Shown piece after piece: positions 1,244-64,000 of a stretch of DNA of 64,000 nt. How positions within the stretch are numbered: position 1 is the first letter of the stretch; each line of letters starts with the position of its first letter. The stretch is taken from assembly GCF_040938485.1 (NCBI RefSeq), contig NW_027271714.1, positions 124,001 through 188,000 of the forward strand, written 5' to 3'. Both the position numbers and the translations under genes were made by a program. The notes beneath the pieces were generated by a model. That model ran no database searches. It was not told the origin of the DNA and was given only the letters and a program-made list of their open reading frames with translations. Origin of the DNA: Diadema antillarum. Taxonomy: Eukaryota.

Positions 1244-4200
1244 CTTTCTTGCGGAGGAATGCCTGCTTCTGAACCAAGGGGCTGGACCGGACTTGAGGGT
1301 TCAGGAGAAATTTTATCGCTGTCTCAATCTTTAAAGAAAACATATTATATGCACACATTATATCTTTTTTAGAAAGAGAGATATACATATCAACAATATC
1401 TTAAAAAGTCATTGTGAACCAAATTTACAAGATACAGTCGCAAATTACTGAACTGATTTAAAAAACAATTAACTTTCAAGAAAAATAGAAAGGCTTAGGA
1501 GTTACGTCATGCAGAGAAAAACAAAGCTCTGGTTCAAGTTGTTGTTGTTGTTTTTCCTCATTGTTAATCTGTGGCATGCTTGTGACTACTGTTCATTGCT
1601 TTCCATTGTAACAAAGGAAAGACACAAAGCTGAATGAAAGACAAAACAGTTGCAATACAATGAACAAGCAAAACTTAATATCGACATCATGTACAGAAAA
1701 TTCACACCAAGCACACTGAACATGCACAATAAAAATACACAAGGCTGTCTTCATTTTGTGCAACACAAATAATCCTATCTTTGCTCTTTGGTCACCGACA
1801 CTAATACATGTACAGGTTACTTGTGCATCACAAATATAAAAACCACCAACTTGTAGTCTAGAATATAAAACCTAAATGATGCTGAACAGCTTATCATCAG
1901 TTTATAATAGTATTCATAATCTCATAAAAACTTTATGGTGTATTAACAATGTACATTGTAATATTGCACATTGTAGTGTTGTGACATGACTATGTCTGAA
2001 AACACTATACAGAAAAGATTCAGACAATCAACAGGATTACTGATGATACGCATGTATATGATTTTTTTTTTCATTACCATTTTCTCTCGTGGTACTTCTG
2101 TGACTGTCTCAACTGTCTCCACACCGCCAGCAGCCCCATCAGCTACTGCAGCAGCAGTGGTCCCAACAGCTGCGGTGTCAGCTGCACCCTACAAGAAAAT
2201 GTGGAGTTAGGTTTTATTGTTTCAATCAACAAGTCACCGCAATGGCTTGTATATAATGTGAAGGCGTCTCAATGAATGTGCTTGTGTTTAGAGACCCTAC
2301 AATCATAACAATCATAGCACTTACTGCAATGTTTTATTTTAACCTGTTGAGGACGGGCTGATTTTGCTACAACATGCATTTCCTATACACACTTGCCTGA
2401 GTATACTCGGGACTCATCCTCAACGGATTAAAAGAATAATTTTTTTCATCTTTAATTCCATTGAGTTATATCTTGGCAGTTTGTATTTCTTTTTTTATTT
2501 TATTTTTGTCAGTGTTACATTTGTAGTTTAGAGGAGAGGTAATCACGGAAAAACAAAGTCCACTATGTTTCTAACGTACTTTTAAAGCTCTACCACAGGG
2601 TTGGCTGAACAACGCCAAGTCTGCAGCTGCAAAACCCAGAAGTGAATGACTGGTCAGAAAAAAGAAAAATATGTAGAAATGAAATTAAATTATTTTGTTG
2701 TTGAGGGCACACACTACTCTTTCCGAATTCCTGAAGCAAAGACATGTTGGTGTTTCCAAGTCAGGGCTTTCGCAAGGGCATTGCATAGTATCGACCTCAA
2801 ACTGCGGCCTGTGTATCGGCCGCAAAGCTCTGTAATTTAAGTATTGTTTAAACCAAGGGCAAGGTCCCAATGTTAAGTATTTAGCCTGAAATGATATATT
2901 ATCTTCTAAGAATCTAGAAAGTATGGTGGGGCACACACACCTCACCAGGGGCCCTACAAGGTTAAATCCACCATCCTACATACAATGGCTACAAAGCGCA
3001 ATGATCAAATACAAGGGGGACTACGTACAGTACGCTTGGAACTTTGCAGGGTTACTACAACCAGCCACGTAAACTGAGACAAAAACAGGCCAGTATTTGA
3101 TGCATCATGCGTTACCCCAGCCAGGGTGCATAACCTCGGGGTACGTTGTGTAGCGCCACCTCACGTCCACTTGAGGACAGCCGCAGAGAAATGCAGGCAC
3201 TGTATGTGCCCAGGTACATAGCCATTGCCATGCCACTGCATGTTATACTATGCATGCATGGTTCGCTGTGCTAGCAATAGTGTGTGCTTCAGTGCAGTGC
3301 AGTGCGGTGCAGCGTGCGCTAGCTCCAGCTAGCTAAAAAACATGACTTATAGAATTTTTTACAAGAACATGGGGCAAACTGAATGTTGAAAAAAATCACA
3401 CCAAAATAATTTTCCACTTTTTGGCAACCTAGGGTACAACATTATATAAAAAAAATAATAATTTAACAAATGGCTGATTTTTATTTGGTACCCCAGAGTA
3501 CCATTTACCAGGTATGTCATCATTTCCTGACATCTTAAATTTGTATACAGAATACGTGTTATTGATCACGGTCCCCCAAACATGTCTTTTACGTGCTTTG
3601 CCTGTGGAGGCGCAGCTGGCGAGGCGCTGACCATTTTTTTTTAATGCACAACTAGACTCTCAGGCCTGAATTCACAAAGATGGTTTAAATTTATGGCACA
3701 ACATTAGACCATAGTCTAAAACAAGCGTGAAATACTTGTAGGCATACATTGTACCTTTGACATGTGTGTATCAATGCTCGTTTGCCACTGGACGTCTATT
3801 GAGTATTGGCATATGCAGTCTGTCAAACATATTTGATGCAGAAGATATTTCATATACAGTATGCATAAAAACCATGGTTTCACTTTAAAGGGACTGTACA
3901 GTACTGGTTGAGGTGAGGATTCAACTTGTTTAATGTTTTGCCAGATATTTAGAAACCACTCTATGAAATGTTAAGAAGCATACAATTCTAAGGGGAATCA
4001 AAAGTTTATTTGATTAAAATCGGTTTTGAAATGACCGAGATCTCTAAAAACAAGGAAAAACAAAGAAATCCTAATAAAAGCTGTGGCTTGTCAATTTCAT
4101 TTGGATCGCTTTTTTCGATATCTCAGCCATTTGAAGGCCATTTTTTTTTATCAAATAAATGTTGAGTCCTTCTTGAAATTACAAGCTCTTTCATATTTCA

Positions 4201-5821
4201 TAAATTATAAGAGGTTTCTCATTTTCTCAAAACCTGAATCCTCACCTCAACCAGTACCGTACAGTCCCTTTAAACCACCTTCATGAATTTCAGGCCTTTG
4301 AGTTCTAAATACAACTGTAAATGACATCATTCTCGTTTCACAACGATAGCTGTAGCCCTTCAAAGTGGGGAACCACAACACAACTACAAAACTTATGAAA
4401 ATTTAAACATTTCTTATAAAAAATGTATACGTTACTCACGTTACGTGCATGCTTGTATTACAGAAGGTTCATACAATGTAAGTCCATAGAGAGCCCTCAC
4501 AATAAGTCCATTGAACAAAAAAATGGCACTTTCTAGCGCAGTAGAACAGCGCAGGAGTCCCCGACCGTCGAGGTTCATCGTTGCAGAATTCAAAATGGCG
4601 AGTTGACTACTCAGCAAATTATGCGTGTGTGCGTGCGTGGCTGGAAGTGCAGCGATCTATTGCGTACGTGCGCTCTTTGGTAGCAGCACGCACGGTCGAC
4701 AGCAAGACCTTTAAAAGTGCATTCAGATTGAGTGAACTGCCAATTATCAGATGTAACGTTCGCACATGCTGCATATAATCATCATTTTCGGTAAGTTGTA
4801 AAATGTGCATTTCAATATTGGTAGCATAGATATGAAGTCTCATTAATGAAGATTTACATTAGATGAGTTTGAGGTGACAAAAAATTATCTAAAGTATCAA
4901 AATTCAAAGCGATCGCAATGCGATCTCTCTTCGTGTCGTGGGTCATGACGGTACAGCCCTGTCGCTACTTTAGCGACTGGGCTGTGTATAGTTAATACAA
5001 TAGCTATGAAATTCGGCATCGATTACTGAACTTTTCATTCCATTGGGAACTTCTAGACACTACTTTGAGCATTTTTCCTTGCGGTGTGTGAGCAGAAGAA
5101 TTTCATAGAATTTCAGTGATGTTGTGTGTAAAAATTAAATCTAGAAGCCTAACTGTTGTTAGACCCTAATAAGTATAACTCTGAAAAAAAACCTTAACTA
5201 ACATTAGTACTACAATAGAAGATTTGTCTATAACTGTTAGAATCTCAGACTCAGTACTGTATGGGCCATGCCATGGTGGTCATGATGGAGATATGCAGCC
5301 AGTGGCAGTGTGCAGCATGCAGGACACTCAACCGTCTGTAGACATGGTAGACTACTGTCTACCTCAAGCCTCCTGCTATTAAAAATATAACCCCTCCTTT
5401 GGCTTGTTTACGCAATGATCGGCCATGCAAATCTAGAATAAGGCAATGACCAAGCCCTAATAAGCAAGGCTAAGGCAATGAAAATCAACACTACGGACAG
5501 TAGAAGCTTGTTAGCTACACAATGGACCACGGAACGAGATTCACATTCTGTGCTGCATGCTGCATCACAAGGTGACTCATGAACAGACACCGCCGGAGTA
5601 GCTGGCGTGGGGAAAACGATAAATCGCTAGCTGGACGGCTGCACCAGCAGCTGCTCAGCTGGCGCGGGAGTCCTCGCCACCCAAGCAACAACATGCACAC
5701 GGTGCCATTTTCTGGCTGATCATGATGGATGCTATCCGCTATCCGCTTACTTATATCACCACACATGTATTATTTTCTGGAAATGATGGCTATTTACCTC
5801 TCCTTGCGATTCCGCAGACAT
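1244..5821 (-). CDS. PEX14: Peroxisomal membrane protein PEX14, 5' coding exons 1-3 (gene continues past window start)
   Basis: Exons 5821-5798 (MSAESQGE, donor gtaaat), 2188-2078 (GAADTAAVG...EVPREKM, donor gtaatg) and 1328-1244 (IETAIKFLLNPQVRSSPLVQKQAFLRKKG, 85 nt, donor gtgaga). The joined sequence PREKMIETAIKFLLNPQVRSSPL...FLRKKG matches the Pex14 N-terminal domain (human, from memory: [23 protein letters not shown]...FLKKKG). Exon 1 assignment is less certain than exons 2-3. Confidence 0.9.
2343..2427. mobile_element. About 85-bp piggyBac-like MITE (TTAA|CC...GG|TTAA); copies at 26494-26578, 27647-27730 and 39131-39215
   Basis: Four dispersed copies with TIR cc(t/c)gttgaggacg / cgtcctcaacgg and a central gagtatactc palindrome. 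Confidence 0.75.
3889..4269. mobile_element. TTAA-flanked 381-bp MITE (Kolobok-like), 35-bp TIRs
   Basis: agggactgtacagtactggttgaggtgaggattca / tgaatcctcacctcaaccagtaccgtacagtccct. The interior is shared with copies at 40514, 43437, 46857 and 60034. Confidence 0.85.
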
Positions 5822-10493: not shown

Positions 10494-10619
10494 ATGACAA
10501 CAACGTACCTGTTTGCTCTGGTGTTTATCTCCTGCCTGTGCTCAATGGCGATGCCCTCCCGAGGTCTTCCCTACGACATGTTTCCCGAGGCTTCCGAAGA
10601 AGTCAACCTCCAAGATCAG
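10494..10619 (+). CDS. Neuropeptide precursor exon 1 (signal peptide + start of propeptide)
   Basis: ATG at 10494 in accATGa context, hydrophobic core YLFALVFISCLCSMA, donor cag|gtacgt at 10620. Confidence 0.85.
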
Positions 10620-13600
10620 GTACGTAAAGACCTTTATAAACTCGTCAAATCCAAGACAGCACATCTCTGTGGTTTAATAATTTGGTGCTGTATTTGTCTT
10701 CTTTCAACAAAAAAAAAAATTGTCGAGAAAGAATAAACCTTCTTTTTTTTTCCATTTGAGGCCTCTTTTGGTCACAAGCCATTCTTTAGTATTTTATTGC
10801 TTCATTTTAATAAAAAATAAACCTTCTCCTTCATTTTCTCTGTATGCCACTGTTTATTTGGTTGCTGCGTTATAGCAAAGGCTACTGTCTTATATCGCGA
10901 AATTAGATAATGATAATAATAATGATCCCAAAATGTTGCAACATATCTTTGGAAGATTAAAGATAATCTTTCTCTCTCAAATTGTAAGTTGTTGTTTTGT
11001 TTGTTTGTTTTGTATTTCAATACAGAATACACAGTAAAACGTATATAGAGTGGCTAATTTAGTGAGGATGCGACAATAATTTCTGCAGTAAAGTTAACCC
11101 AGGGCCTGATTAGTTAACCATGTCTATAGACTTTAACTGATAAAGTGAATGGCAGACATTCGGGCTTATATTCTGAAAATGCTTTCCATTTTACACAATA
11201 TTATCGCTCTTTTATTTGGAAAAAAAAAAGATAGTCATGTTAGACCAGCTCATTATATTTATGATCCTCCTGGAATACTCCTTCTGATAGCGATTGTCAT
11301 TGTTTCTTCATTATGTCAGACATAATATTATTACCGATGTCTTTGCTGCATTACGGCATGATAAGAAAAAAAATAGATGCCATGAGAAAAAAAAATAAAA
11401 ATACACGGTACATTAATTCTCGTGTTTTATTTCATGTTTATAAAAATTGATGTTCACATGTTAAAAATGTAGCTTTTATGAGTGTCTCAAAGTATGAATT
11501 ACCTGCTCCACAACTTGTAATATGCCATTTATCTATATTCTTTGTTAATGTAATGTTTATCTACTCTCTTCTTAATAAGTAAGGGTACCATTCACTTAAT
11601 TTCAATCGTTGTCTTCTGTGATGGAAATATTATTTCTTTCCTCACACAAATTGAAAGTGGATTTTTGTCCTATAAAGCTGTAGGAGTTTTTACCTTTTTC
11701 AATGTTTTGTATAGCTTAGTTTTGTTTTCTGACCTTATTACCTGTCTTCTGAATCTTGTAAACATTCACATTCATATACTAATGAAGTAGAATAATCACC
11801 CACGGGAAACTTACATGGCATCACATATCACGTGACTACAATTAAATCTACATTTCAATGCAGCACACACAATGAAAAGAATGAATATGACGAATAGACG
11901 GAGGAAATCATAAACCTTGACAAAGAAGATACATGTATTACGACTTGCATACACATGACCACACACAATCATGTGAAGGAAGGAAAAACAGTATATGGGA
12001 TAATCAAAACTACAAATTATAAAACATTAATTTTGATCTTTTTTCTTTTCGTTGACGCCTAGAACACGCAAAAGCTGATGTTGATGAAGCTGCTCTCGGG
12101 AAGTAATCTCAGCCTGGAAAGTATCGCATCCAGAGTCTCGAACCTACAACCTGACAAACGAGGATCATCCAGTTGTGAGTATCCACTATGGTATAGCCAC
12201 CCGTATACACGTGATCTTCAACCAAACCAATAACACGAAATGTCAATCGATATATTAAAAGTCCGACTGAGGAGGGGGGGGGGGGGGAGGGCGCTCAGGC
12301 CAGGAATTCCGCAAAGGGAGGCACATCACCTATTTTTTCTTTTGATTTATTTTGTCTTAACAAAAAAATAAAAAGGGGCGTGCGCCTGGTGCGCCCCCCT
12401 CTGGATCCGCCACTGTGGCCCCACTTTTTTTGGATGACTTTATTATAGGAATACATAGGATCTAATTACTTGCCCCATCCCCCCCCCCCGTTTTTTTCCC
12501 CAAAAGTGGCACCAGAAAGAAAGAAAGAAGAAAAAAAAACCGTGGTTAAGCTTTATTTGTGGTGTACCAAAGTTGCACTGAGGACCCTTTTTTCCCCTGC
12601 TTGTTAGCTGATGAAACCCGGAAGTGGCACCAGAAATACAATGCATAGAATGGGCCCCACTTTTCAAAAACGTGGGTGCCGGCCATGTTACATCATGACA
12701 CAGTGTCATGCTAATTGAAGGGGTGGTATTCGTCACTATGAGTAAAACTGCACAAATAAAGCAAAATAAGTATTTTTGAATAACCCGGGGTTCTGCTTTG
12801 CCCATGAGCAGAAAAGAAACTGGTAATTTGTACCAACAGCTAGGTGTGTTGGATTTTATTTGCAGAGAAAAACATGAGATGATTATTCAAGGGATCCTTA
12901 CAAATAGTGCTTGCTGGCACATCCGCCTGACAACGAAAGTGGAACAATGACAATATCAATAGAAAACACCCCAACAAAATTAGGCCCTAATGCTAATGCA
13001 TTCCACGTCAAATTATAAAATAGAGGCTTTCCAAATTGTTAAGTGACGGTCCATTCTGGTGACCTGTAGTCTACGCAAGTTCATCCTTTGTTTAAACGTG
13101 ATTGATGAATTCAAAAAATTGTTATGCCGGGCAAGCTTATGCTTTACGGCGCTTTCAAAACGAGTTAAGTGCCTAGCCAAATGAGAGAGAGAGAGAGAGA
13201 GAGAAAAAAAAAAAGAAGGTCATTATGATGATATAATTATTGTTGTCAACATTTTCTTTGCTACCCCAAAATTTCTGCAATGAAAATACCGCTACAGTGG
13301 GGAAAATTACCACGTTAATAAACGATTAAATGAATCCAAAGCCGTAAAGTGAAAGTATTCCGTTTCCTTGTATGATCCATTAAGTATAAGTTTATACTTC
13401 ATGAGTCTTTTACCAGTTTTAATGTAATGTACAGTATGCCCAATGATCGCGAAAACCATCCAAAGTTTTCATATCGTAAATAAAAGAGCATAATATAAAT
13501 TCTACAATATTGTATGTAGCGTATAATAATCATTGGAGGTTGCTACTCTAGTTAGATGGATTCTGCTTGCATGTTTATTCTCATATCTTCTCAAACGATA

Positions 13601-13747
13601 ATCGACGTGAACCTCCATAAATTTCTTGTATATAAACAGGTATCATATATCACATTAATAACCTCTCCCTCTCTTTCTATCTCACTCCCTCTTTCCGGTC
13701 ACATGATTACAGCTAGCGGCTGTCGCTTTTGGAAGATTCTTTGTTGA
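10494..13747 (+). CDS. Somatostatin/urotensin-II/allatostatin-C family neuropeptide precursor (90 aa, 3 coding exons)
   Basis: Exons 10494-10619 (phase 0), 12063-12174 (phase 1) and 13713-13747 splice in frame to MTTTYLFALVFISCLCSMAMPSRGLPYDMFPEASEEVNLQDQ-NTQKLMLMKLLSGSNLSLESIASRVSNLQPDKR-GSSSSSGCRFWKILC*. It has a hydrophobic signal peptide, an acidic spacer, a KR convertase site and a C-terminal two-Cys peptide containing FWK. Confidence 0.85.
12063..12174 (+). CDS. Neuropeptide precursor exon 2 (propeptide + KR site)
   Basis: Polypyrimidine tract + ctag| acceptor, open frame ending DKRGSSS, donor |gtgagt at 12175. Confidence 0.85.
13713..13747 (+). CDS. Neuropeptide precursor exon 3 (cyclic core SSGCRFWKILC*)
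   Basis: First AG after a long CT-rich tract (13662-13697) is at 13711-12. The phase-1 join gives S-S-G-C-R-F-W-K-I-L-C-TGA. Confidence 0.8.
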
Positions 13748-13983
13748 TGAGACGACCAATAGACCAAGGCACCTGTTACCACGACAACGCCGTAATCCTC
13801 TTTGACTCACGGAATATCTCTTCTTTAGCGATTCAAATCTTAGTATCACCACATCAAATTCCATTCGAAGGAAATCATCTAAGCTCTTTAGCTGGAACAT
13901 GGCGTAATCACGTACGGTCCATACTTCAACTAAGTACTAGTATTACTTTACCCCATGCCTACGTGACTTCCAAGGGTGTTATA

Positions 13984-14174
13984 CAGTGGACTCCCGTTAT
14001 AACGAAATCCTCGCGGGACTGGCAGATTTCTTTCGTTTTATCGAAATTTCGTTACAACCGAACAAATAAACAATAAGAATGCATCGACCGGATAATGTTG
14101 AGGTCTGAATGTTTACTTCGTTGTAACCGGAATTTCGTTAACTACAGCGTGCTCATTGAAACGGGAGTGCACTG
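13984..14174. mobile_element. Tc1/mariner-type MITE (TA TSD) downstream of the neuropeptide stop codon
   Basis: ta|cagtggactcccgtt ... aacgggagtgcactg|ta. Confidence 0.8.
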
Positions 14175-20800: not shown

Positions 20801-23800
20801 GAATTCTCTTAAAGGGATGGTAGGTATTGGTGGAGATGAGAATTGGGCGTTAACTTTTTGCGAGATACCAAGAAAACACTTATGATATAGTACAGAACAT
20901 ACCATTTTTTAGAGGAATTCAAAGTTTATTTGATGAAAAAATGTCTGGTTTTACAATTTATAACATTGTAATTGGACAACACAGAGAAACTATACCAATC
21001 TGAGATTGAGATTTTCCTTCCACGAACTTATTACCTTGGCGATTTTTGCCCATGAAAGACACGTTACAGGTGTTTGGAATTCGCCGGCTGCCTTCAAACT
21101 TCCCATTGATGTGAATCATATCACCAAAGGCAGACTACTGGGGACAGAAAATAAGACATAAATAGTTTTGTTTTGTCTATGGTATTGCTGTCTTGGTAAA
21201 TATTAAACTTCAACTTCATATGACAAACAATTACCAAAAATCTGCTGACAAAAAAAAAGCCATTAGCAGAAATGACAGAAAGTTCTTACTGTTCTTTTCA
21301 AATGGCACAACCAAAATCAAATGTTATATACACATAGGAGAGAAAGATAAGCATTGTGTGAAATACTATCATCATTTCATTTCTGCCTTTACACAGGCAT
21401 ATAAACATATATGCATACCAACTTCTTTGTTTTTTAACTCACAGTGTGAATTTAAGTAAACATCTTATCTAGAAACCAATAAATCCCATAAAAGAAAATA
21501 ACACTATCGAAGCGGCATTTAAATGCCCTTCTGACAGTTTAGTTACAATGAAATTCCAGGACATGTTTCCCGAGAGGAGTCCTTTTTTTTTTTTTTTTTC
21601 AACTGGGGACTATAAAACCAATTTTTCAACTGTGCAACAAACAATTTTTTTAAAGGTCATGTATTCTCTTAGACTATATCTATGCTCTTGCTATAATGTG
21701 CATAATATGACCATTAATTGACTAAGATACTATACTGGTAACTATATTATCAAGGTGCAAATTATTCTCACCAAGAGTGACTCCTCAAGATAGTCTCGTA
21801 CTGCTCTCATTCCAGACTCGTATTTGCCAATATTTCCCGTGACAAGCTCTGCAGCCTGTGAGAAAGGGAAGCAGAAATTCCGCGTATGACTCTGAAGTCA
21901 CTTGAAACACTTTGCAAAGAGGCCGTACATGTGTCAAACTATCTTGATAATGCTATATCAAGAAGTTACGTGTACATGACCTTGAGCTAATCCACACTGG
22001 TACAATTGTATTGGAACATGAAGGGCCATTCTGGGTATTTCTGAAATATCAAAACTATTCAAAAATTCCACCACAGAGTCTCAAATTAGCAGTATATTTC
22101 CTTGAATTAGGGTAGGGTCATTAATTCTATGTCTGATATTCTTCTACAGGCAAAGGTAGACTGCTGGAATGAATAATATAAGACTGAAAATTTACACTAC
22201 CATGACTTTGCTTGACCTGAGGCTTTTTTGTGTTTTCATCATAAAAAATAATAATAATAATAATAATAATACATAACATTTATAAAGCGCTTAATATCAT
22301 ATTTCTAAGCGCTGGGGAAAAACAAAGATAGAGAACGAGTGAAGAAGAAAACAATAAGCAATCCACATATAAGTACAGCAACAATCATATATATGACAAC
22401 AATTACAAATACTAGTACACTACCGACACAGATAACACTTCCTAAAGAGATATGTTTTGAGGTTTGACTTAAATGAATCTAGTGTATTGGCTTGTCGGAT
22501 GCTGACGGGAAGATTGTTCCATAGTTTAGGAGCAAGAGAGGAAAAGGCACGATCACCATAACGTGTGTTGGTACGAGGTCCAGAGGATAACTGAAGATTG
22601 GCAGTGGTGGCGGAACGAAGACGTCTGGTTGTGGAGGATGTGGATGCAGAGCGGAGAGAAACAAGATCTTGAAGGTAGGGTGGTGCGAGGTTGTGGTTGA
22701 TTTTGAAAATGAGAAGGAGAACTTTGAAGATGATTCTGTCTTGGATCTGTAGCCAGTGAAGGGACTGTAAGATTGGGCTGATATGATCTGATTTTTTAGT
22801 TCGAGTGACAAGTCTGGCTGCAGTGTTTTGTATTCGTTGAAGGGGTGCAATGTTGGAAGACGGGAGACCAGCAAGGAGACCATTGCAGTAATCCAAATGT
22901 GATGAGATGAAGGCATGGACTAATCGTTCCGTGGATGACTTATCGAGATATCGCCTTATCTTTCCGATTTTGCATACACCTCATGAGGCGGATCGACATA
23001 TACTTTTAATTTGGTGATTAAGAGTCAGGTTCTTGTCAAGAATAACCCCGAGGTCTCGAATACGCTCTGACGAAGAAATGCTTCCAGATTCAAAGTTAAG
23101 AGATGGCAGGCAGTCTGTATTACGGAACTTGGATGACAGATGAAGCATTTCAGTTTTGAGCTCATTAAGCTTCAGCTTATGCTCAAATGACCATCTCTTC
23201 ACATCATTGATGCAGGCGGAGAGTCTGAGCATCGCCCCCTCATGATCTGATGAGCTCATGATGAGGTATATTTGAGTGTCATCAGCGTAGGTTGCATGTT
23301 GCATTCCATGATGAGAGTTGATAAGTCTTCCCAAAGGACCGGTGTACAGGATATACATCAGGGGTCCTACAACTGATCCTTGAGGGACCCCATAAGGAAG
23401 GGAAAAGGGTCTGGAGCGAGTGCCATTAACAAGAATCTCCTGATTGCGTCCCTCCAGATAAGATTCTATCCAATGGAGAACAGTTCCTTTGATACCACAA
23501 TCAGACTCAAGACGATGAAGGAGACTGTGATGATCTAGCGTATCAAACGCAGCGGAGTAGTCTAAAATAATGAGGACAGCTTCCTGACCCTTATCCAGAG
23601 CAAGCAGAAGATTATTAAGGACTCTTACCAGAGCAGTTTCAGTAGAGTGAAAATGACAATAAGCCGATTGATGAGGTGGAAACAAGCTGTTTTCATCCAG
23701 ATAAGTCCTGAGTTGAGCTGCAACAAGTTTCTCAAGGACCTTGCTAAGAAATGGTAAGTTAGTGATAGGCCTGTAGTTCTTTAAATCATTCCGTTCAAGA

Positions 23801-26800
23801 CCAGGTTTCTTTAATAAAGGTACCACATGTGCTGTCTTGAACTGCTCAGGAACCACTCCTGAGGAAAGAGAGAGGTTGATGATTTGTGTCATAAGAGGCA
23901 GAAGTTCATCGAGACATGCCTTTACCAGCCATGTGGGGATTGGATCCAAGCTGGAAGACTTTGAGGATAGCGATTTAATGAGGGATTTCACTCGGCTTTC
24001 GGGAACAGGATCAAACTCTGACAGATTGCAGTCAGGTGAAATCCCAGGTTGTGCAGGCACACAGGAGAATGAAGAAAAATGATCTCAAGAGATCATTTTT
24101 GGTGTTTTCGTCATAAAACTATATGCTACAAATACTTCCTATTACGCCACATCATTATTGTCTGTACAAATAGTACATTCTCAGATACAAGCAAACACAC
24201 TTATTTATCTTCCTCTAGACTAAGTGATATCATGTTTGTATCGTGGTGTGCGACTGAAGAAAAGTCATACCAAACAGCCGTAGTGTACTCCTTTTCTGTG
24301 AAGTATTCAAGCTTTCTCACACTCAAATACAAATTTTCCAATGGTAATATGTAAATCAATCTATCCAGAACAACTATGCACACACAACTACTCTAACAGT
24401 GCAAGATCGTAGACGTGATATCACATACATTTTCCTCCCACACAGGGCAAAATTGAGTCCAGTTGGCCTAAAGCTTTGAAGAAACATCAAAGTTGTCCAC
24501 TTCATTGCAGCTTCTTACCTTTCCCAAGCCTGCAATCATTCCAGTATTCTCTGTCCTACAATTGATACAAAATTTATTATAAAGGAAAACAAAGAGAAGA
24601 TAGAACTGTTAATAGATGAAATTCTAATAAATCATTATAATCTATACCACCACAGGGAACCTTGGGGCTAGCTAGTAGTAAGACAAAACCAAATGTAGAC
24701 TAATCTATAGAGTGGCATACATAAATATGGTTACCCCATGACATTAAACCTAACACATACATATGGCTACAAATTGCCCCCCCCCCCCCCCCCCCCCGGA
24801 AAAAAAAAACCAAAAAAGAAAAAAAACCTAACAAACATTCTTATGCCTTCCATATCTTTAAAAAACAAACAAACAAACAAAAACCTTTATAAAGAATTTG
24901 TTCATACTACAAAGGGTGAAGAACACAATATTAGGTACAAACATTTACTCCAGCAGGTAGCACACCAATTGAATTTACCCACGCGTTTGTAGCTTTATGG
25001 TACCCCCGACACCATTTGTCCTTAACAAAAACCGTGATAAATCTTTTTGCTTGGGCAGTCAATATGTTCTTCTGGGTCTTCTGTTTCTCTTCTGAGAGAT
25101 GGACCATCTCTTCTTAACCTGAGTCGACTGACTAAGTTGTACAAATGTGGCACATAAAGAGTTAATACCTGTGCAACTTTTCTAAGGCACTCTAAAAAGT
25201 GAGATCTGCAACCTTAAAACCATCGATGGAGCCTCTCCTTACTCCAAGGGGGTACATGTGGATCTAAGCTTGCCACTCACCCAGGCCTAAGATTTCTCTC
25301 CTGTCCTCCTCCAAAGAGCATGGGGTAGATGGGTGGGCCTGCCCCACCCCTTTTCACATACAGGGCTCCAATCCTCGGACCATAGAACTGAAATAACACA
25401 AATGAAAGCACCCAATAAAATTGTAACTGCTGACCATTTCAAAGATAACCAACCTGTACACATATCTGAAATGTACATTTTTCCACTCACTGCATTTATT
25501 TTTCTCACCTTTTGATGGTAAGAAGGGCGCAAAGGTGTTATATAAAGCAATATGCAAAAATCTAAATACTTATGCATATGATTATGTACACCCTTTCCTG
25601 AAAATCATGTTTATTGGTGGACTTTTGTGGACATTTAAAAAACAGATTTCATTTAGGAAACAGATTTCATTTAGAAGCTACAAGATGGATTAAAGTTCTC
25701 AAACACATCAAGAAATCAAACAAAGAAAATAACTCATTAATTCATTAGTGGTAGGTTAATTATCATAAACTGCATTAGTTGGTACTAAACACTCTGACCA
25801 CCATCAAAGTCACGAATGATGATAAAAAATTTATATAGATTCAACGAATGAAATAAAAACGACAAATGACTACAATATCAATACTAATGATCGACATAAA
25901 AGTGATCATCATCACCATCATTGCGATTAAAGCTACAAGCACAGCAGCATGTATCATCAAATGATGATGAATAATAAGTGACCCTCTAGATGCATACCTT
26001 GTGACCAACAATTGTCAGGTAGTCTACGTTCAGATCGGAAACATTGACTTCAATCTTGCCGATTGTCTGGGCAGCATCTGTGTGCAAGAGAATCTTCCGC
26101 CCTCTGTGGCTTTTCTGCTCTTCTCTCACACGCTCAAATATCTCCGTCACTGGCTGGAAAAAACCAAAACAAAACAAAGGAATATCAGAATAAAAATGGT
26201 CTTGTTGATCGACCTATTTGACATCCCTGTGTTCATACAGTCCTACTCATCAACACAGAATTATGCACATGTTAGTTTCCCACAGTGTTACAGTGCGTGC
26301 CTCATTTTGATTATATCCCATTTTATACTGCATATGAATTCAGTGTTGTATACACTTTCCCCCATTTCAATTTCCTGAGGAGGGGTTCTGTGATATGTTG
26401 CCAGTTGTGGTTCTCTTGTGCAGACACTAATTGAGTCCCACATATCCATATCCATGTTGGGAGGCTATAGCTGATAGCCAGCTCTCTCATTAACCTGTTG
26501 AGGACGGTTTGACTTTGCTACAACACGCATTTCCCATAGACACCTGCCCGAGTATACTCGGCACTCATTCTGAACGGTTTAACAAATTGTGAGCATTTTC
26601 TTAAATGATCAATGATCCTTACCAATCTGGGAAGTGTAGGAAGTTATGTAAGCAATGTTTTCATATCCAACCATAAACAGATACTGCTTCTCCTGATATG
26701 CTCAGCTCTCATTATGACAACTAAGTGTTTGTCACAAATTACTGTCAATACTTGGTTGCTTCTCTTCTCTATCATACTTTTCATCTTTTGGTTTTAAGAT

Positions 26801-29800
26801 TTCTCCTTCCTACTGTAAGACAGTTAAAAATTCTCAAGGTACTTAACATACCTGTATCACTCCAATCTCATTGTTGGCATGCATGATGGTGATGAGACAA
26901 GTGGCCGGTCTGATGGCATCCATGACTGCCTCCACCTCTACTCTACCGGTCTTGGTGGACGCCGGCACAAAGGTGACATCAGCTGGTGGAAAAAAGAAAG
27001 AGACATTGAAACAAACTAATCTCAATTCCTTCACTTAATCATCTTCTTCATCTACTTTCCTTTGCAATCACATTGGAGTGCCTTAGAACTGACAATGAAA
27101 ATATATGTGAAAGGCAGATGGTGACAGAGAAGTGTACAATGATACATTGCAATTTATCCTTCAATGTGATTTGTTAGTTAAATGTTATGATGGTGAAAAA
27201 TAATGATTTATCGTCAGAAATGTCGGGACAAATGAGTGGACAGTACAGTGCAGCATTGATAACATAAATTGATTATCATATTACACATGTCTCTGACAAT
27301 TATGGTATTGGTGAAGAAACAACAAAATACATTTTACTTCTTCAATGCAATCAAATTCAGTTTANNNNNNNNNNNNNNNNNNNNNNNNNNNNNNNNNNNN
27401 NNNNNNNNNNNNNNNNNNNNNNNNNNNNNNNNNNNNNNNNNNNNNNNNNNNNNNNNNNNNNNNNNNNNNNNNNNNNNNNNNNNNNNNNNNNNNNNNNNNN
27501 NNNNNNNNNNNNNNNNNNNNNNNNNNNNNNNNNNATTGAAAGTCTTTGCTATTAAACCTGAAGACAGACAGGGGTGTGGAAGATCATAGGGGTATTCCTG
27601 AAGAGATAAATAAAAGCTACATGAAAAACTAAAAAACACACATTAACCCGTTGAGGACGAGTCTCGTGTATACTCAGGCAAGGGTCTATGGGAAATACGT
27701 GTTGTAGCAAAATCAGTCCGTCCTCAACGGAGTAAATCATTTCAATATTTATAGGATATTCAAGATAAATCCATCTAATTGCAAGCTATCAAGTCAGACT
27801 TTACTCACCAATCCCTTCTTTGATGAGATGTTCCAGTGGAAGCTTAATAGAATCGTGCTCCAGGTTGGTTGTGATGATGTGGGGCTTGAGAGGGTGCCCT
27901 GCATCTCCATTGGCATTTCCGTCGCCATGGTGACAGGTCTTGAAATGTGTGATTGCTGTGTGTATTACAAGATTGTTTGCCTGAATTGGAAAACACACAC
28001 AAAAACAAATGTAAACAAAACAATATAAAACCATAATGACTGTTTCTCTTTGAAGAAATTATATTGTGCTACACTTTATACTTAATAAAAGTAATAGAGA
28101 GTTTGTGATAAAACCCAGAGTGATCATACTGTTAGGGGTCGCACTTAACTTTTTTTTAAACTAGCCAGGCGGACTACTTAGAATCAATTTTGACACTGAA
28201 GCAACATTTTGGCTAGCCAGATGGACTAGTTACTTCAGAATTTTATGATTTTTAGCTAGTCTGACATGATTTTGGGTGGCCAATGGCCAGCGGACCATCG
28301 CCAATTTCGAACCCTGAATCATGAAGATTGTTTGGTTGTGGGGGCCAAGATCTATATCATTACCTCATCTAATTTGCATATGGTTAGTGTGGTTGCGACT
28401 TTATTATCTTGTGAAAGCAAGTGATACTTTAACATTCTTTTTCCTTCTCATTCTTTACTAACTTTAGTAATAATCTCAATTTGCCATATGTATCGCAACC
28501 CCCCCCCCCCAAAAAAAAAGTGGAATTAAACATGGTTCACATCAGTAAGAGGATGACTTACATAACACTGAAATGGATTACAACATTATGACGTGATTGA
28601 AAAGCATGTGCTGTACTCTTTCATACCCACTGTAAAACTGTCACAACTTTACCAACCACAGGAGCCAAACTAACATAATTTCAATGGAGGGAATCAATCT
28701 TACTGATATATTAAAAAAAAGAGAACATTTTCCTATTTCATATTGTTTCATTCAATCCACTTCGATATCAACTCAAACAAGGAGTGGACTTTCACTTTAA
28801 CCCTTTCTTTTTCAAGGACTTTGGACAGTGTGTACAGCCATATGGCTTTTTCTTTGCCTATCAACACTAAAAGCACACAAAGGTTTAAGGAAAAAAAAAA
28901 ATATATATATAGTTTTTTAGACCTGCACCTCCACCTGTAAGAAAACTCTCTTAGCATTACCTCTGTGCCTCCAGATGTGAAGATGATGTCACCGGGGGAT
29001 GCCCCTATCATGTCTGCTACCTGTGCTCTGGCCTTGTTGATGACCTGCTTGGCAAGCTGACCTTTGACGCAAAGAATAGACAACATTCATGCAACACTAT
29101 TCTGGCAATATAATACAAAGCTTCACAAAGCAGCACAAGTCTTTTTTTGTGTGTGTTTCTTTACATAATTTTGCAAATAAGACCTGATGGAAATACATTA
29201 TAACTGATGCCAGTCAAATTTGGACAAATATTGAATACAGCATTTCTCTTTTGTCTCACTTATTTCTCATTGGATTGGGCACTGTTCTACTCTAGATTAA
29301 GAATTATCCCAATTTTGCTAAACGTTTGTGTATAGTGCAGTGATTTATCAAGATGAATGATTGAAAAAGCAATCTTTACTGCCTGGCATTTGTCAGATCT
29401 ACATCAAAGTTGTGACAATCTGGCTCCTTGTTTTGTTGTTGTTTTACTGCTCCATTTTGCACAGATATTCTCCAAGTTTCATTCAATTTCTCTCCTGTTC
29501 CCATGGGTCCCAATTACCTTGTGGATAAGAGCTGCTGGGGTTCCCCCAGGCTTCGGTCAGGGCATTGGTCACAGCTTCTACCACAGCAGGCTCCAAGGGC
29601 GTTGTGGCATTGTAATCCAGGTACACCCTGTTGAGACAATAATGTCCATTGCACAAGCTCTTCAGAATGAATATGCACAGCAAACAGTCGGTCTATAGTC
29701 TAATATTAAAGGAAAAGCTTGGATTTAAAAAATTTACTTGTAGAGAAACAGTTGTACTGTGGTCTATGTTATGTAACATAGTCATAATACTAATAATAGA

Positions 29801-32571: not shown

Positions 32572-32906
32572 ATGTATTCCATCTCATCCTCATTACTCCT
32601 CTGCTGCTCCGTACTGCTACTATGTCTCGCTTCAATTCATTGCGCACCAACGAGACCGAACATCGTCTTCATCCTGGCAGACGATTATGGTTACCATGAC
32701 ATCGGTTACCATGGCTCAGAGATCAAAACTCCCAATCTGGATAAGCTGGCTGCTGAGGGTGTAAAACTTGAGAACTACTATGTGCAGCCAATTTGCACAC
32801 CAACAAGGAGCCAGTTGATGAGTGGGAAATACCAGGTTTGGGAAAGCCTCATTATCAGTAAAGAAACAAATATGATAACAAAATGTTTAAAAAGCACACA
32901 TACACC

Positions 32907-32939
<33 letters not shown>

Positions 32940-35900
32940 CTAACCTTACTTGTTTCCTTGTGAAATGTCCTCAGTTTAGCTGATGACACATATTGAGGTT
33001 AGTTATTACCACTACCATTTTATTGTGATCCACAGTGCATGCACATTGACTCAATCATGCCATTCTATAACTGGATACTAGATTTGTTCTACATTATTGA
33101 AGAGAAATGCATTGCAAGTTTGAATTCTCTTGATAAACAGGTAAATTAGCCAAAAGTTTAGAAAGGAGATTGGCAACTAATAAGGAAAGAAACAGCCATA
33201 AATTAACATGTAGAATCTCAATTGCAGACTTGTGGCCCAAGTCCCACCTAAAGGAAGATGTGCAAATCCTAAGTAAAGATATGTTTCTTGCTTTCTTTGT
33301 TCTTTTTTTTTATCAGCGAACATATCTTTTGTGTTTCTTAACATGAAATGCCCATAAGAAAGAGTTAGTTGTCTGAGAGTTGTAAAATACTTGTTTGTGC
33401 CATAGATTTTTCAAGTAAATCTGTCTTACAATTGATTTCAACTCAATAAAAAAAGGCTTGTATGGATTAGCTATAATGAGTATGATGTGAATTTGAACTT
33501 TATACTATGATAGATTAATTCTGTCTTGTTTTGCTATTTTGTTTTTACTGATTTCAAATTCAGATTCACACAGGGTTACAGCATAGCATCATATGGTCAC
33601 CCCAGCCAAGCTGCCTTCCTGTGGAGGACCCCACCCTAGCTGACCAGCTCCTGAAGGTAGGGTACGCTACACACATCGTGGGCAAGTGGCATCTTGGCTT
33701 CTACAAGAAGGCCTGCTGGCCCACCAGGAGGGGCTTCCAAACATTCTTTGGTGAGACAAACATCCCCTTGGGTTTCAGGGTTCAAACCCCAAAATATGGC
33801 ACTAGTGTCCCTGAGTAAATTGCTTTTTAACCATTGCCTCCGAATTTCAGTAATTTCCATAGATTCAATGTTTGGCACTTAACTCTGTTGGCATTAGCAA
33901 TGAGTTCATATTATACACAACACTTTAATAAAATTTTGTTGGATATCGGGATTACTTGCCCCCTAAAAACACTCCTATCTTTCTTTAGACTAAGGACTTT
34001 CTGTCTTCCCAGTATGTGAATTTGCCAATCTACATTGCACGTGAGGTTAACCCCAAAAGAGAAATATCACCAAATGGATAGTTATTTGATTTAGTTGTTG
34101 TATTTAGGACTGCTACTAGGATCCATGCTGGCTTTGGGGACACAATAAGAATCCATGAAAATGAAGAAAATTCAAACCTCAAGAATCCATCTACAAGGTA
34201 TTTTTAATAGCGAGGCCACCAAACTGTGCTCTGTCGTAGATCCTGTCTACCAGTAATTCCTAAACTGATCAATGAGCTCAAACACCAGACATGCTCTTTG
34301 TTCACATCCAGGCTACCTCACAGGTTCAGAAGATTACTACAAACACACTCACCCATCCAACGGCTGGAATGGTAAGGACCTCCGAGATGGCGAGACGGAA
34401 GTGGAAGATGAATACAAGGGAAAATATTCTACTCACATCTTTGCCAAGAGAGCGGAGGAAATTATCCACAACCATGATGCTACTCAGGTATACATAAAAG
34501 ATTTAAGCTTACCTTCTGAGTCACTTTCCCCTCTTCTCTTTTGTTTTATTTTATAGCCATTTGGCACTTAGATATCTGCAACTTTCAACCCAGCTTTTCA
34601 ATGTTTGCTTATCATGGGGGTTTGCTTCCCAGTCACTTGCATGTTTCTCTGTTGGTAATCTCATAAATTTAATTGTTGGCGTTGCCTCTCGAACTCATGT
34701 AGGTATGCATTGCATGATCTTGATCAGACTTAACTTAATTTCATTACATGCACAACAAATCCATGATCAATGCAAGTGGTTTTATTGAATTAAGTTGCTT
34801 TTTTTTAATCATGCAATAATATGTAGGCCTATTGCTTCTTATAAGGGCCAAATATTGTTAATGACAGAGCATTGCTTGTTTGACAAAGTAAAAAAAAAAG
34901 ATATCATGTCTGTTGTGTGACATCGATTCCCCATGACCAATTTCAGAGTTATGTTGCACAATTGTAAATGTGCACAAAGCAAATGATATTCAGAGGGCCC
35001 AATGTACATGAATGTGTGACAGACAGTTTAGATCAAAATGAATGACATTTACAACAGGAAATACAAAATTTACAGAAACAGATGTGCACTCCTCCAACCA
35101 CTTGATGGTTAGGTGTGAGTTGCTGCAGAAATGTTATTCTTGTTCTTAGCCAATACTTTATTTTTTTATTTACGTGAGTATTTGTTTTCTTTTCCCTCCA
35201 GCCATTGTTTTTGTACATCCCTTTTCAAGCTGTCCATAGCCCACTCCAAGTCCCTGTCTCGTACACAGAGCAGTACAGCTTCATTCAGAACAAGGCAAGA
35301 CGGCAGTACGCTGGAATGGTGTCCTGCATGGATGAAGCTGTGGGAAATATCACACAAGCCTTGAAAAAGACTAAACTGTGGGATGATACAGTCCTCATAT
35401 TTTCCACAGGTATACCAAATATCAGGCCTTGTCTTTTTTTATGGAGGGAGGGGGATTGTGAATGGAGTGGAAGAACTGTTTCCTTTCAGTTATTCAGTTG
35501 AGGAATCACATCATAGGTCATATATATAAGTTCATTTTCAGTTCATTTCAGTTCAAGCCATTTTGGATAAAGCATCTTAAAAAGCTTCCACAATTGCGCA
35601 CTTTACGGTTAGACAAAGGTATGAAATATGAACATATTGAAGAATAATGAAGCCAAGATATGCTTGAAAGGTGCAAGATTGAGCAGGAATTTACATTTTG
35701 AACATCATTTGCTGTGACAGTAATATGTGGGGGGGTCATCCAACGAGACCCATACCCACAAGTCATATGACCCATGATTTTGACACTTAAAAAAAAGGTC
35801 CATGAGTCATACAGCCCATGAGTTGGACACGAGGCAAATAAGGCCCGTGGGTCGACACTGGGTAAAAACAGCCCAAGAGTTCGAAATGTGTCAGTCTCTT

Positions 35901-51843: not shown

Positions 51844-52000
51844 AAAGTCTATTAGCATTGCCACGCAGACAATATCCTATACATCCCTGGATCATCTTGT
51901 GACATTCGACATTCTACCATTAGCTCGACAAGACTCTTCTACGACTAGAAACGCTCTTCATTAATTTCGAGTGCAAGTCAGCAACTTACCTTATGATACG

Positions 52001-61203
<9,203 letters not shown>

Positions 61204-63564: not shown

Positions 63565-64000
63565 TTACAGTTCCACTTTGCGCATGAGCAGGAAAAGGTC
63601 ATTTGTACAATCAGGCATGTTGGTTTTATAATTCACTGAGATAAAGCATTCCGATGTAATGATTATTCATGTAACCCTTGTAAATGGTGCTTACTGGCAC
63701 ATCCACCTGACAACAAGCCTGGTATCTAGCAATGTTGGTAAAAAAAGTTTGTTTATGCATTCAGCATAAAACAATGAAATGAATGCCTGCCGAAGTGTCA
63801 ATTGACAGACCATTCTTGTCACCTGCTCAGCATAGATTTATTCTTTGTTTGAATGTGAACTCCATAAATAATTGTGGGCATGCTTTAATATGCTTCATGC
63901 TGCTTTGAATATGAATGAAGTGCCTAACCAATTGAGAAAGAAGAAAGGTCATTCGTACTAATGTGCCCATGAGCTAACTGTGAACTGGCTTATAAGAATA

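Follow-up and report, generated by a model that had tools for sequence, protein, structure and literature searches.

The window, that is, the whole 64-kb stretch of Diadema DNA analysed here, probably holds an unannotated gene for a 90-aa precursor of the somatostatin (SS)/urotensin II (UII)/allatostatin-C (ASTC) superfamily, known from the sequence of two very close genomes and so far found in Diadema only. The best explanation of this gene, seen as it is in Diadema only, is that it is a third one beside the echinoderm genes SS1 (ASTC-type) and SS2 (SS-type). In layout, its nearest match is the protostome somatostatin-related-peptide-like (SSRP-like) genes, cone-snail consomatins included, and its peptide appears to be of a kind unreported in echinoderms. 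The relationship of somatostatin, urotensin II and allatostatin-C, as orthologues or as ancient paralogues, is debated, and so is the date of the SS-UII split (Zhang 2022; Koch 2022); echinoderms are the key outgroup for both questions.

A probable three-exon gene and its predicted peptide

Joined at consensus splice sites, three exons form an in-frame CDS of 273 nt that encodes the precursor (Table 1). The ATG of exon 1 is preceded by a Kozak-like cacc, and the exon ends on a phase-0 donor (CAG/gtacgt, where the slash marks the exon border) after codon 42, i.e., 23 residues past the predicted signal cleavage. Exon 2 lies between the acceptor ..ttttcttttcgttgacgcctag and a phase-1 donor (GTT/gtgagt), and ends with GSSS plus one nucleotide after the KR site, i.e., with the first four residues of the mature peptide. 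Exon 3 follows the acceptor ..ctccctctttccggtcacatgattacag and reads ..SSGCRFWKILC before the TGA. An alternative acceptor at the AG of 13715-16 is considered unlikely: the pyrimidine tract is first followed by an AG 4 nt upstream of it, and the frame that it opens lacks the Cys loop. Peaks of GC content (0.46-0.52) coincide with the exons and their flanking UTR-like sequence, the introns being at 0.31-0.40. One dispersed repeat (12790-13190, with about 64% identity to 63570-63941) lies in intron 2, together with G-runs and a (GA)n run; repeats overlap none of the three exons. The Cys-loop motif of the type CRFWKILC occurs only once in the 64-kb window, in exon 3, and neither a second WK-loop exon nor a paralogue was found there. 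Near the start, we found neither a full CRE palindrome nor a TATA box. The initial annotation had described a three-exon, in-frame, 90-aa secreted precursor ending in KR-GSSSSSGCRFWKILC, and the splice sites, the frame and the motifs bear this out; the ORF list agrees with its remark that no single ORF reveals the precursor.

Table 1. Features of the peptide gene and of the neighbouring gene PEX14, in window coordinates.
Feature	Positions	Strand	Description
PEX14 coding exon 3	1244..1328	-	Pex14_N domain, IETAIKFLLNPQVRSSP..; Pfam PF04695 E=1.3e-9
PEX14 coding exon 2	2078..2188	-	GAADT..EVPREKM
PEX14 coding exon 1	5798..5821	-	MSAESQGE; matches the N-terminus of D. antillarum PEX14 (P0033)
Exon 1, coding part	10494..10619	+	42 codons; ATG, signal peptide, acidic beginning of proregion
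Predicted signal peptide	10494..10550	+	Residues 1-19
Intron 1	10620..12062	+	Phase 0, 1443 nt, AT-rich (GC 0.31)
Exon 2	12063..12174	+	37 codons + 1 nt; remaining proregion (..KLMLMKLLSGSNLS..), KR site, start of mature peptide
KR cleavage site	12156..12161	+	Residues 74-75
Mature peptide	12162..12174, 13713..13744	+	
Intron 2	12175..13712	+	Phase 1, 1538 nt
Exon 3, coding part	13713..13747	+	Rest of mature peptide, FWK motif, both Cys; TGA 13745-13747
Putative 3' UTR	13748..14070	+	AATAAA at 14065-14070; GC 0.42 vs 0.37 beyond

We infer expression of the gene, processing of its product, a disulfide and a receptor, in the following form. The predicted signal peptide (hydrophobic LFALVFISCLC, predicted cleavage before Met20, with the small residues S at -3 and A at -1) would take the precursor into the secretory pathway. 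The precursor ends in KR-GSSSSSGCRFWKILC-stop, with a single copy of a 15-residue peptide, and cleavage by a prohormone convertase after Lys74-Arg75 would yield this C-terminal 15-mer in non-amidated form. The absence of an amidation signal had been claimed before, and the peptide indeed terminates on Cys, with no C-terminal Gly. A disulfide between Cys8 and Cys15 (calculated monoisotopic mass with disulfide, 1614.73) would close the six-residue loop RFWKIL, the ring size that the initial annotation had likened to allatostatin-C, and would display a Phe-Trp-Lys turn, the core with which somatostatin and urotensin II bind their receptors. The target of the peptide would then be a class-A GPCR from the SSTR/UTS2R/SSRP-like-receptor group.

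Such a chain of features can also arise by chance. A random sequence of 64 kb should contain the terminal motif 0.027 times, a suitable acceptor for it occurs with a frequency of 0.08, and an upstream signal-peptide exon plus a KR exon in matching phases were obtained in 2 out of 300 random trials. Under this crude null, the combined chance is about 1.5e-5 per window, or about 0.2 per 1-Gb genome. A model produced by chance is unlikely yet possible, and independent evidence is therefore needed.

Conservation, gene neighbourhood and searches for homologues

A second copy of the gene is present in the D. antillarum record, which is 94-95% identical to the window. It occupies the corresponding place upstream of PEX14 (locus L002), where the record has no called gene, and all three exons, the start, the stop and every splice site are intact. 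The two CDSs differ by 5 substitutions (1.8%) and 0 indels. All five differences fall in exon 1 (four synonymous and one non-synonymous, T2A), exons 2 and 3 being identical, and they give a dN/dS of 0.074 based on 5 changes only (P=0.011 under neutrality). The introns differ at 2.6% of sites and by 65 indel columns (intron 1 alone: 3.9% of aligned sites and 49 indel columns), such that the raw substitution rates of CDS and introns show no clear difference in genomes that are 5-6% diverged.

PEX14 is the head-to-head neighbour of the peptide gene, with 4.7 kb between the two ATGs. We used it as a synteny anchor, searching with its exons for PEX14 homologues and extracting the 10-kb flanks from nine genomes (one homologue, P0006, is a 1.3-kb transcript contig only). 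Among these nine, the peptide gene is present only in D. antillarum: the 10-kb flanks of PEX14 contain no counterpart in S. purpuratus (sea urchin), A. japonicus (sea cucumber), A. rubens (starfish), Amphiura (brittle star), Anneissia (crinoid), Ptychodera and Saccoglossus (two hemichordates) or B. floridae (amphioxus). Coding exon 3 of PEX14 is the only tblastx block common to the window and the other eight species. A 114-aa gene upstream of PEX14 in A. japonicus was rejected as a peptide precursor, as it is an LRR fragment.

At a larger scale, A. rubens chr18 carries PEX14 at 7.55 Mb and SS2 at 8.91 Mb, B. floridae chr14 carries PEX14 and an SS-type gene (at 4.67 and 6.03 Mb), and the human order is CORT-DFFA-PEX14; we take human UTS2 to be located on 1p36, as are CORT and PEX14. 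The head-to-head arrangement of DFFA and PEX14, found in Ptychodera, Saccoglossus, amphioxus and human, is ancestral. An ancestral CORT-DFFA-PEX14 microsynteny is upheld in part only, given that no SS-like exon was found beside DFFA-PEX14 in the two hemichordates or amphioxus and that DFFA, like TMEM222, is absent from the Diadema window. The data support linkage-group synteny alone, the peptide gene lying in the linkage group that bears SS-type genes in starfish and amphioxus.

We searched 5.8 billion proteins with exon 1 and with the whole 90-aa product and found no match, a result that is uninformative because Diadema transcripts seem to be barely represented. In the PEX14 look-up, the genome record was the sole Diadema entry found. 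Neither the whole precursor nor its C-terminal 23 residues matched Pfam. Metagenomes were scanned for DNA encoding CRFWKI[LF]C, and the 26 matches were all rejected as chance, all being out-of-frame stretches of low-GC bacterial genes. A TARA match ('STSSSLGCRFWKILC*') was rejected as an out-of-frame stretch of the bacterial ORF MEQMKSPH..IIDPHHHLWD, presumably an amidohydrolase. The peptide was nowhere described in a full-text search of 8.4 million papers (CRFWKILC, its sub-strings, echinoderm urotensin-type, consomatin/ASTC), and the supplements of Zhang 2020, Zhang 2022, Zandawala 2017 and Semmens 2016 contain SS1 and SS2 only.

The novelty that had been put forward as possible has so far survived both the literature search and the protein search, and the noted mismatch with echinoderm SS1 and SS2 holds against the S. 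purpuratus peptides, GKCMGRFGPYMLNC for SS1 and PARKICINDIWKGRGGGLRCN (..CINDIWKGRGGGLRCN) for SS2. Two other points of the initial annotation stand in part. The proposed SS/UII/ASTC member in an invertebrate deuterostome agrees with the host, the gene layout and the linkage group, conservation having been seen in one close relative. Conservation in related species holds for D. antillarum, where the gene is intact and the loop identical, but not beside PEX14 in the eight others.

Alternative readings and implications

It is unlikely, though with an appreciable probability, that there is no gene at all and that an FWK Cys-loop ORF near a good acceptor was chained by chance to two open segments via GT/AG. 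This reading can draw on the expected frequencies of the terminal motif and of the full chain given above, on the chance occurrence, out of frame, of DNA encoding the motif in bacterial metagenome contigs, and on the lack of any entry at the peptide gene in the protein search and in the D. antillarum annotation. The 10-kb PEX14 flanks of the eight other species and a CDS raw rate that is not clearly lower than that of the introns also point in its direction. It accounts poorly for the excess of synonymous differences (4/5) without indels, for the exact coincidence of exons and GC peaks and for the consensus strength of both donors. Nor does it predict a series of family details that were not used to build the model: a phase-1 intron four residues past the KR site, a Gly/Ser-rich N-terminus and an SS1-like proregion. 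As the SSRP-like layout played no part in finding the model, its fit is independent.

If the gene is real, it could have diverged strongly from the echinoderm SS1/ASTC-type gene, as its paralogue or its orthologue, and not be kin of UII/SSRP-like genes, its WK being secondary. The proregion is weakly similar to that of Ophionotus SS1 (ungapped over 40 residues, score 36, shuffle P=0.015) and shows no similarity to that of SS2 (P=0.41). The peptide shares with GKCMGRFGPYMLNC the pattern G..C..RF..(M/I)L.C, and its loop resembles the C-YFNPIS-C of protostome ASTC in having six residues, the second of them F and the fifth I. However, the phase-1 intron of the Diadema gene is at the SSRP-like site, which is reported to differ from that of SS1 (Koch 2022, PMC9048919). 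SS1 peptides are moreover nearly invariant in all five echinoderm classes (FxP, 10-residue loop), making an orthologue this divergent unlikely, and the whole reading seems to us unlikely. The spines of Diadema are mildly venomous, and it can be envisaged that a real but lineage-restricted gene encodes, instead of an endogenous neuropeptide, a peptide secreted for defence or as a 'doppelganger' that imitates the FWK pharmacophore of chordates, by analogy with cone-snail consomatins; we consider this very improbable. Consistent with such a mimic, the gene is seen in Diadema only and is missing at the syntenic site of non-venomous echinoderms, the FWK is of chordate type where sea-urchin SS2 has IWK, the loop is reduced to a minimum, a trait of consomatins and octreotide-like analogues, and consomatins derive from exactly the same gene layout (Koch 2022, PMC9048919). 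Yet a dN/dS of 0.07, albeit from 5 changes only, is opposite to the strong positive selection that consomatins are reported to show, and the gene is single-copy within the window, with no expansion.

The reading that we prefer, a third gene beside SS1 and SS2, could be made more specific: a gene of the UII/URP-SSRP-like lineage might survive in Diadema, an invertebrate deuterostome, together with SS2 and SS1, in the PEX14-bearing SS linkage group. We hold this to be distinctly unlikely. The split between somatostatin and urotensin would be older than chordates, an 'alternative model' that had been set aside on parsimony (Koch 2022, PMC9048919), and the other echinoderms examined would have lost this lineage or carry it elsewhere. 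The SS1-like proregion and the 'RF' of the loop could then tie echinoderm SS1 to the UII/SSRP-like lineage and not to ASTC. A third echinoderm gene with the FWK core, an SSRP-like/UII layout, a loop of ASTC size and a proregion like that of SS1 would be a concrete intermediate, relevant both to the orthology of the three peptides and to the SS-UII split. If the preferred reading is true, orphan SSTR-related receptors would gain a candidate ligand in this peptide, itself a naturally minimised FWK cyclopeptide. It would also aid in testing the puzzle of ArSS1, which has no known receptor. If the gene is instead confined to Diadema, it would exemplify a neuropeptide-like gene that was born recently or has diverged rapidly, and might encode a defensive mimic.

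Comparison with known peptide families

The resemblance to echinoderm SS1 lies in the combination of a phase-0 and a phase-1 intron and in the 'RF' of the loop. The second intron is at the SSRP-like site in Diadema and is reported at another site in SS1 (Koch 2022, PMC9048919). The SS1 motif C-x-G-R-F-x-P with its 10-residue loop is not found, the Diadema peptide having no Pro, a six-residue loop and WK, and the precursor is about 40 residues shorter than that of SS1. With SS2, it shares the linkage group, as SS2 is linked to PEX14 in starfish. The SS2 peptides (including ArSS2 of A. rubens) have a loop of 12-13 residues, within the 10-15 expected of the type, the signature D-[FI]WKG-R-G and one phase-0 intron, whereas Diadema has six residues in the loop, neither Asp before nor Gly after the motif, and two introns; its FWK is aromatic and chordate-like, in contrast to the IWK of sea-urchin SS2. 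Protostome allatostatin-C (C-YFNPIS-C-F) has the same loop size, a Phe at position 2, an Ile at position 5 and a phase-0 intron, but the Asn and Pro of its loop are absent in Diadema, which has WK instead, and the second intron is in phase 2 in ecdysozoan ASTC, missing in spiralian ASTC and in phase 1 in Diadema.

Vertebrate UII/URP (..CFWKYCV) resemble the Diadema peptide in having FWK in a short Cys loop at the precursor C-terminus. Their loop has four residues instead of six, with a Tyr in place of Ile-Leu, and they have a hydrophobic residue after the last Cys where Diadema has none, such that the CFWKYC hexapeptide is not found in Diadema. We know of no UII-type receptor reported from echinoderms. 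The UII/URP genes also have more introns, the first of which is in phase 1 and not in phase 0 (Zhang 2020).

The general traits of the SSRP superfamily, i.e., a precursor with a signal peptide, a basic cleavage site, a single C-terminal peptide and a WK within a two-Cys loop (the disulfide being predicted), are found in Diadema. The place of intron 1, 23 residues past the predicted signal cleavage, also agrees with the superfamily, and by sequence the only link to its members is the weak proregion similarity to Ophionotus SS1. Within this superfamily, protostome SSRP-like precursors cluster with vertebrate UII/URP; examples are Aplysia apUII and Capitella Ct-SSRPL1, pQASSGAQICIWKVCPPTPW (Koch 2022, PMC9048919). 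In the SSRP-like/consomatin genes, three exons are separated first by a phase-0 and then by a phase-1 intron. Exon 1 encodes the signal, exon 2 extends over the first 1-5 residues of the mature peptide, and exon 3 encodes the WK motif and the Cys loop, the peptide being single-copy, at the precursor C-terminus, with a Gly/Ser-rich N-terminus (Koch 2022, PMC9048919). The Diadema gene has this organisation throughout, its exon 2 ending four residues into the mature peptide, and its peptide has in common with theirs an aliphatic residue after WK. The differences are in the peptide and in the host: the loop has six residues and not the four that are invariant in SSRP-like peptides, the residue before WK is the aromatic Phe and not Ile/Leu/Val, and the peptide stops at the second Cys, without the C-terminal Pro/Trp extension. 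SSRP-like genes have been reported from protostomes and none from deuterostomes, to which Diadema belongs.

A candidate peptide gene and its second copy

The initial annotation had proposed a three-exon gene for a secreted precursor, and its coordinates, splice sites and joined frame all held on inspection of the sequence. The 90-residue product has no Pfam domain match and carries an N-terminal hydrophobic signal core (LFALVFISCLC) followed by an acidic stretch; the residues at -3 and -1 relative to Met20 are small. Cleavage after Ala19 would remove the signal peptide, and a convertase cut after Lys74-Arg75 would set free, unamidated, the predicted mature peptide GSSSSSGCRFWKILC, which has six residues between its cysteines and lacks an amidation signal. 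A Cys8-Cys15 disulfide would close the loop of this 15-mer (calculated monoisotopic mass 1614.73 Da) and may show the FWK turn to a GPCR of the SSTR, UTS2R or SSRP-like-receptor type. GC content peaks at the exons and UTR-like flanks (0.46-0.52; introns 0.31-0.40), the three exons are free of repeats (the one recurring segment is intronic, 12790-13190, and is seen again at 63570-63941), and an AATAAA lies 318 nt downstream of the stop. The public D. antillarum record has no called gene at this site.

The terminal motif by itself is insufficiently rare, with 0.027 occurrences expected per 64 kb of first-order Markov sequence of the window's composition. The probability of an acceptor that could serve in the required phase is 0.08, and an upstream signal-peptide-like ATG exon and dibasic-ending exon with matching phases arose in 2 of 300 random trials. 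Multiplied together, these figures predict about 1.5e-5 chance models in each window and some 0.2 in a 1-Gb genome, and independent support is therefore required.

Over 14 kb the window shares 94-95% identity with the D. antillarum locus L002 (GCA_040938485.1, JBFRCO010000771.1), which makes the window a Diadema, either of another species or a divergent haplotype. L002 carries the three exons at the matching position, upstream of and divergent from PEX14, with start, stop and all splice sites intact. Of 2956 aligned intron sites 77 differ, and there are 65 indel columns besides; the coding sequence has no indels, and its five substitutions (four synonymous third-position changes and T2A) all fall within exon 1. 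Given 61.7 synonymous and 208.3 non-synonymous sites (Nei-Gojobori), these five substitutions yield a dN/dS of 0.074 (P=0.011 under neutrality), while raw divergence (1.8% in the coding sequence, 2.6% in introns) does not clearly differ. We read this as real, if modest, evidence for coding constraint. The peptide gene is probably a real gene; that it is a chance chain of ORFs seems unlikely, the expected number of such models per genome speaking for this explanation and the indel-free, mostly synonymous divergence of the second copy against it.

Features of the window (positions on the forward strand)
Feature	Position	Strand	Remarks
Peptide gene exon 1	10494-10619	+	ATG in cacc context; 42 residues; donor CAG/gtacgt, phase 0
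Peptide gene exon 2	12063-12174	+	Pyrimidine-rich acceptor; 37 residues ..QPDKRGSSS plus one nucleotide; donor GTT/gtgagt, phase 1
Peptide gene exon 3	13713-13747	+	After ..ctccctctttccggtcacatgattacag; finishes Ser codon, then SGCRFWKILC, TGA
PEX14 coding exon 1	5821-5798	-	N-terminus matched to D. antillarum PEX14
PEX14 coding exon 2	2188-2078	-	Product near-identical to D. antillarum PEX14
PEX14 coding exon 3	1328-1244	-	Pex14_N domain, Pfam E=1.3e-9
Class-V aminotransferase, N-terminal exon	28751-29086	-	Aminotran_5, E=6e-6
Secreted arylsulfatase, first exon	32572-32940	+	Sulfatase domain, E=7e-13; own signal peptide
Galactose-3-O-sulfotransferase	47330-48490	-	Single 386-codon ORF; PF06990, E=1.6e-55
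Carboxylesterase/cholinesterase-family exons	51971-52408, 56090-56488	+	COesterase, E=5.5e-19, 1.5e-11
Reverse-transcriptase-like long ORFs	22420-24060, 61953-62951	-	Probably LINE-type retroelements
Run of N	about 27360-27530		Assembly gap or masked stretch

Genomic neighbourhood and searches in other species

The peptide gene and PEX14 stand head-to-head, 4.7 kb apart from ATG to ATG. The PEX14 N-terminus in the window is nearly identical to that of D. antillarum PEX14, and HMMER with the domain exon, followed by a homologue search, returned PEX14 from many deuterostomes. The class-V aminotransferase, probably of cysteine desulfurase or selenocysteine lyase type, runs toward the peptide gene's 3' end. 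An ORF at 41460-41813 (+), which we took for a later sulfatase exon, has no Pfam match; the catalytic domain of the sulfotransferase is apparently intronless. The probable retroelement ORF at 61953-62951 has tblastx matches to an element in an intron of Amphiura PEX14 (L007, about 14.1-14.8 kb).

We searched the 10-kb PEX14 flanks of eight further genomes (S. purpuratus, Apostichopus japonicus, Asterias rubens, Anneissia japonica, Amphiura filiformis, Ptychodera flava, Saccoglossus kowalevskii and Branchiostoma floridae). With the precursor as query, tblastn recovered the intact D. antillarum copy and no counterpart in these eight flanks. A loose terminal-exon scan found no WK-loop counterpart exon there, and tblastx of the window against them gave no counterpart of the gene, the PEX14 domain exon being the sole common block. 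Searches of 5.8 billion proteins with the exon 1 product and with the whole 90-residue product returned no homologue. The gene is thus known only from Diadema; outside this genus the search covered PEX14 flanks, so a move to another site would fit as well as absence. A defensive mimic restricted to this lineage would fit such a distribution; we consider it very improbable.

Metagenome matches to the peptide-coding pattern were all out of frame in bacterial sequence. In two TARA Oceans scaffolds (L030, L031), a low-GC bacterial ORF read out of frame spells STSSSLGCRFWKILC-stop; the ORF itself (..IIDPHHHLWD..) is presumably an amidohydrolase. In very large collections, an eight-residue match with a plausible Ser-rich lead-in can thus occur by chance. 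An open stretch inside a Saccoglossus PEX14 intron (L036, 21895, +) ends ..NCWVCLWFWKQFCQS-stop, which places FWK between two loop cysteines; since a dibasic site is lacking, as is any evident acceptor, we judged it a chance occurrence.

In two species PEX14 shares a chromosome with an SS gene, the distance between them being about 1.4 Mb: A. rubens chr18 (PEX14 7.55 Mb, SS2 8.91 Mb) and B. floridae chr14 (PEX14 4.67 Mb, SS-like 6.03 Mb) (Zhang 2022, Dataset S1). This supports placing the peptide gene in the linkage group bearing SS-type genes, a position compatible with an intrachromosomal duplicate or an old paralogue. The human gene order is APITD1-CORT-DFFA-PEX14 (PMC554762). DFFA (CIDE-N and DFF-C) is head-to-head with PEX14 in Ptychodera, amphioxus and Saccoglossus (L008 1-4201, L009 1-9774, L036 2630-6704), and this arrangement is therefore ancestral. 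TMEM222 (RTE1) occupies the DFFA position in the crinoid, brittle star and starfish (L005 5917-8866 and L006 5718-9667, with L007 3726-9675 in the brittle star Amphiura); neither gene was found in the Diadema window or the S. purpuratus PEX14 flank. Since the window holds no DFFA, and the flanks of Ptychodera, Saccoglossus and amphioxus hold no SS-like exon beside DFFA-PEX14, a tighter echo of CORT-DFFA-PEX14 at the peptide gene is not demonstrated. In D. antillarum, S. purpuratus, Anneissia, Ptychodera and Saccoglossus, the gene after PEX14 is an LRR_TMOD-LMOD gene that stands tail-to-tail with it.

Comparison with known SS, UII and ASTC systems

The echinoderm peptides described in the literature fall into two types, SS1/ASTC-type (S. 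purpuratus GKCMGRFGPYMLNC) and SS2/SS-type (S. purpuratus PARKICINDIWKGRGGGLRCN, A. rubens RAKNARCMADFWKGRGLVDC) (Zhang 2020). Compared with these sequences the Diadema peptide is neither, as the initial annotation had suggested. It is absent from the paper texts searched, and our literature search turned up neither a urotensin-like echinoderm peptide nor a third one of SS type.

Within the superfamily, the gene might instead have its origin in SS1, as a diverged paralogue, and not be a relative of the UII/SSRP-like genes. SS1 genes also have a phase-0 and a phase-1 intron, the 'RF' and (M/I)L.C tail are common to both peptides, and the proregion aligns with Ophionotus SS1 over 40 ungapped residues (score 36, shuffle P=0.015), with no similarity to SS2 (P=0.41). 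The second SS1 intron, however, is reported to lie at a site other than the SSRP-like one (Koch et al. 2022, PMC9048919), and we hold this origin to be rather unlikely. That echinoderms keep a UII/SSRP-like-lineage gene alongside SS2 and SS1 is more doubtful still; if true, the SS/UII duplication would be older than chordates, a model set aside on parsimony (Koch et al. 2022, PMC9048919). The gene is well defined and bears on this open question about the SS/UII family. On the basis of two nearly identical genomes, we lean towards a genuine SS/UII/ASTC superfamily member.

The strongest comparison is with the protostome SSRP-like (somatostatin-related-peptide-like) genes for signalling peptides, such as Aplysia apUII and annelid SSRPL, and with the derived cone-snail consomatins. 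All follow one canonical plan: two introns, of phase 0 and then phase 1, divide the gene into three exons, with the signal sequence on exon 1, an exon 2 that runs 1-5 residues into the mature peptide, the WK motif and disulfide loop on exon 3, and a peptide N-terminus typically of Gly and Ser (Koch et al. 2022, PMC9048919). The Diadema gene, whose exon 2 stops four residues past KR and whose peptide begins GSSSSSG, matches each point of this layout, which played no part in its first spotting. It differs in a loop of six residues instead of an invariant four, and no residue follows its second Cys; the six-residue loop, Phe at position 2 and Ile at position 5 recall protostome ASTC. Cluster analysis groups SSRP-like precursors with vertebrate UII/URP, and echinoderm SS2 with SS/CST (Koch et al. 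2022, PMC9048919). With its SSRP-like layout, SS1-like traits and ASTC-like loop, the gene would therefore be a mosaic within the SS/UII/ASTC superfamily, which we file nearest the SSRP-like/UII branch on the grounds of its architecture, and as a member of neither UII, SS1 nor SS2.
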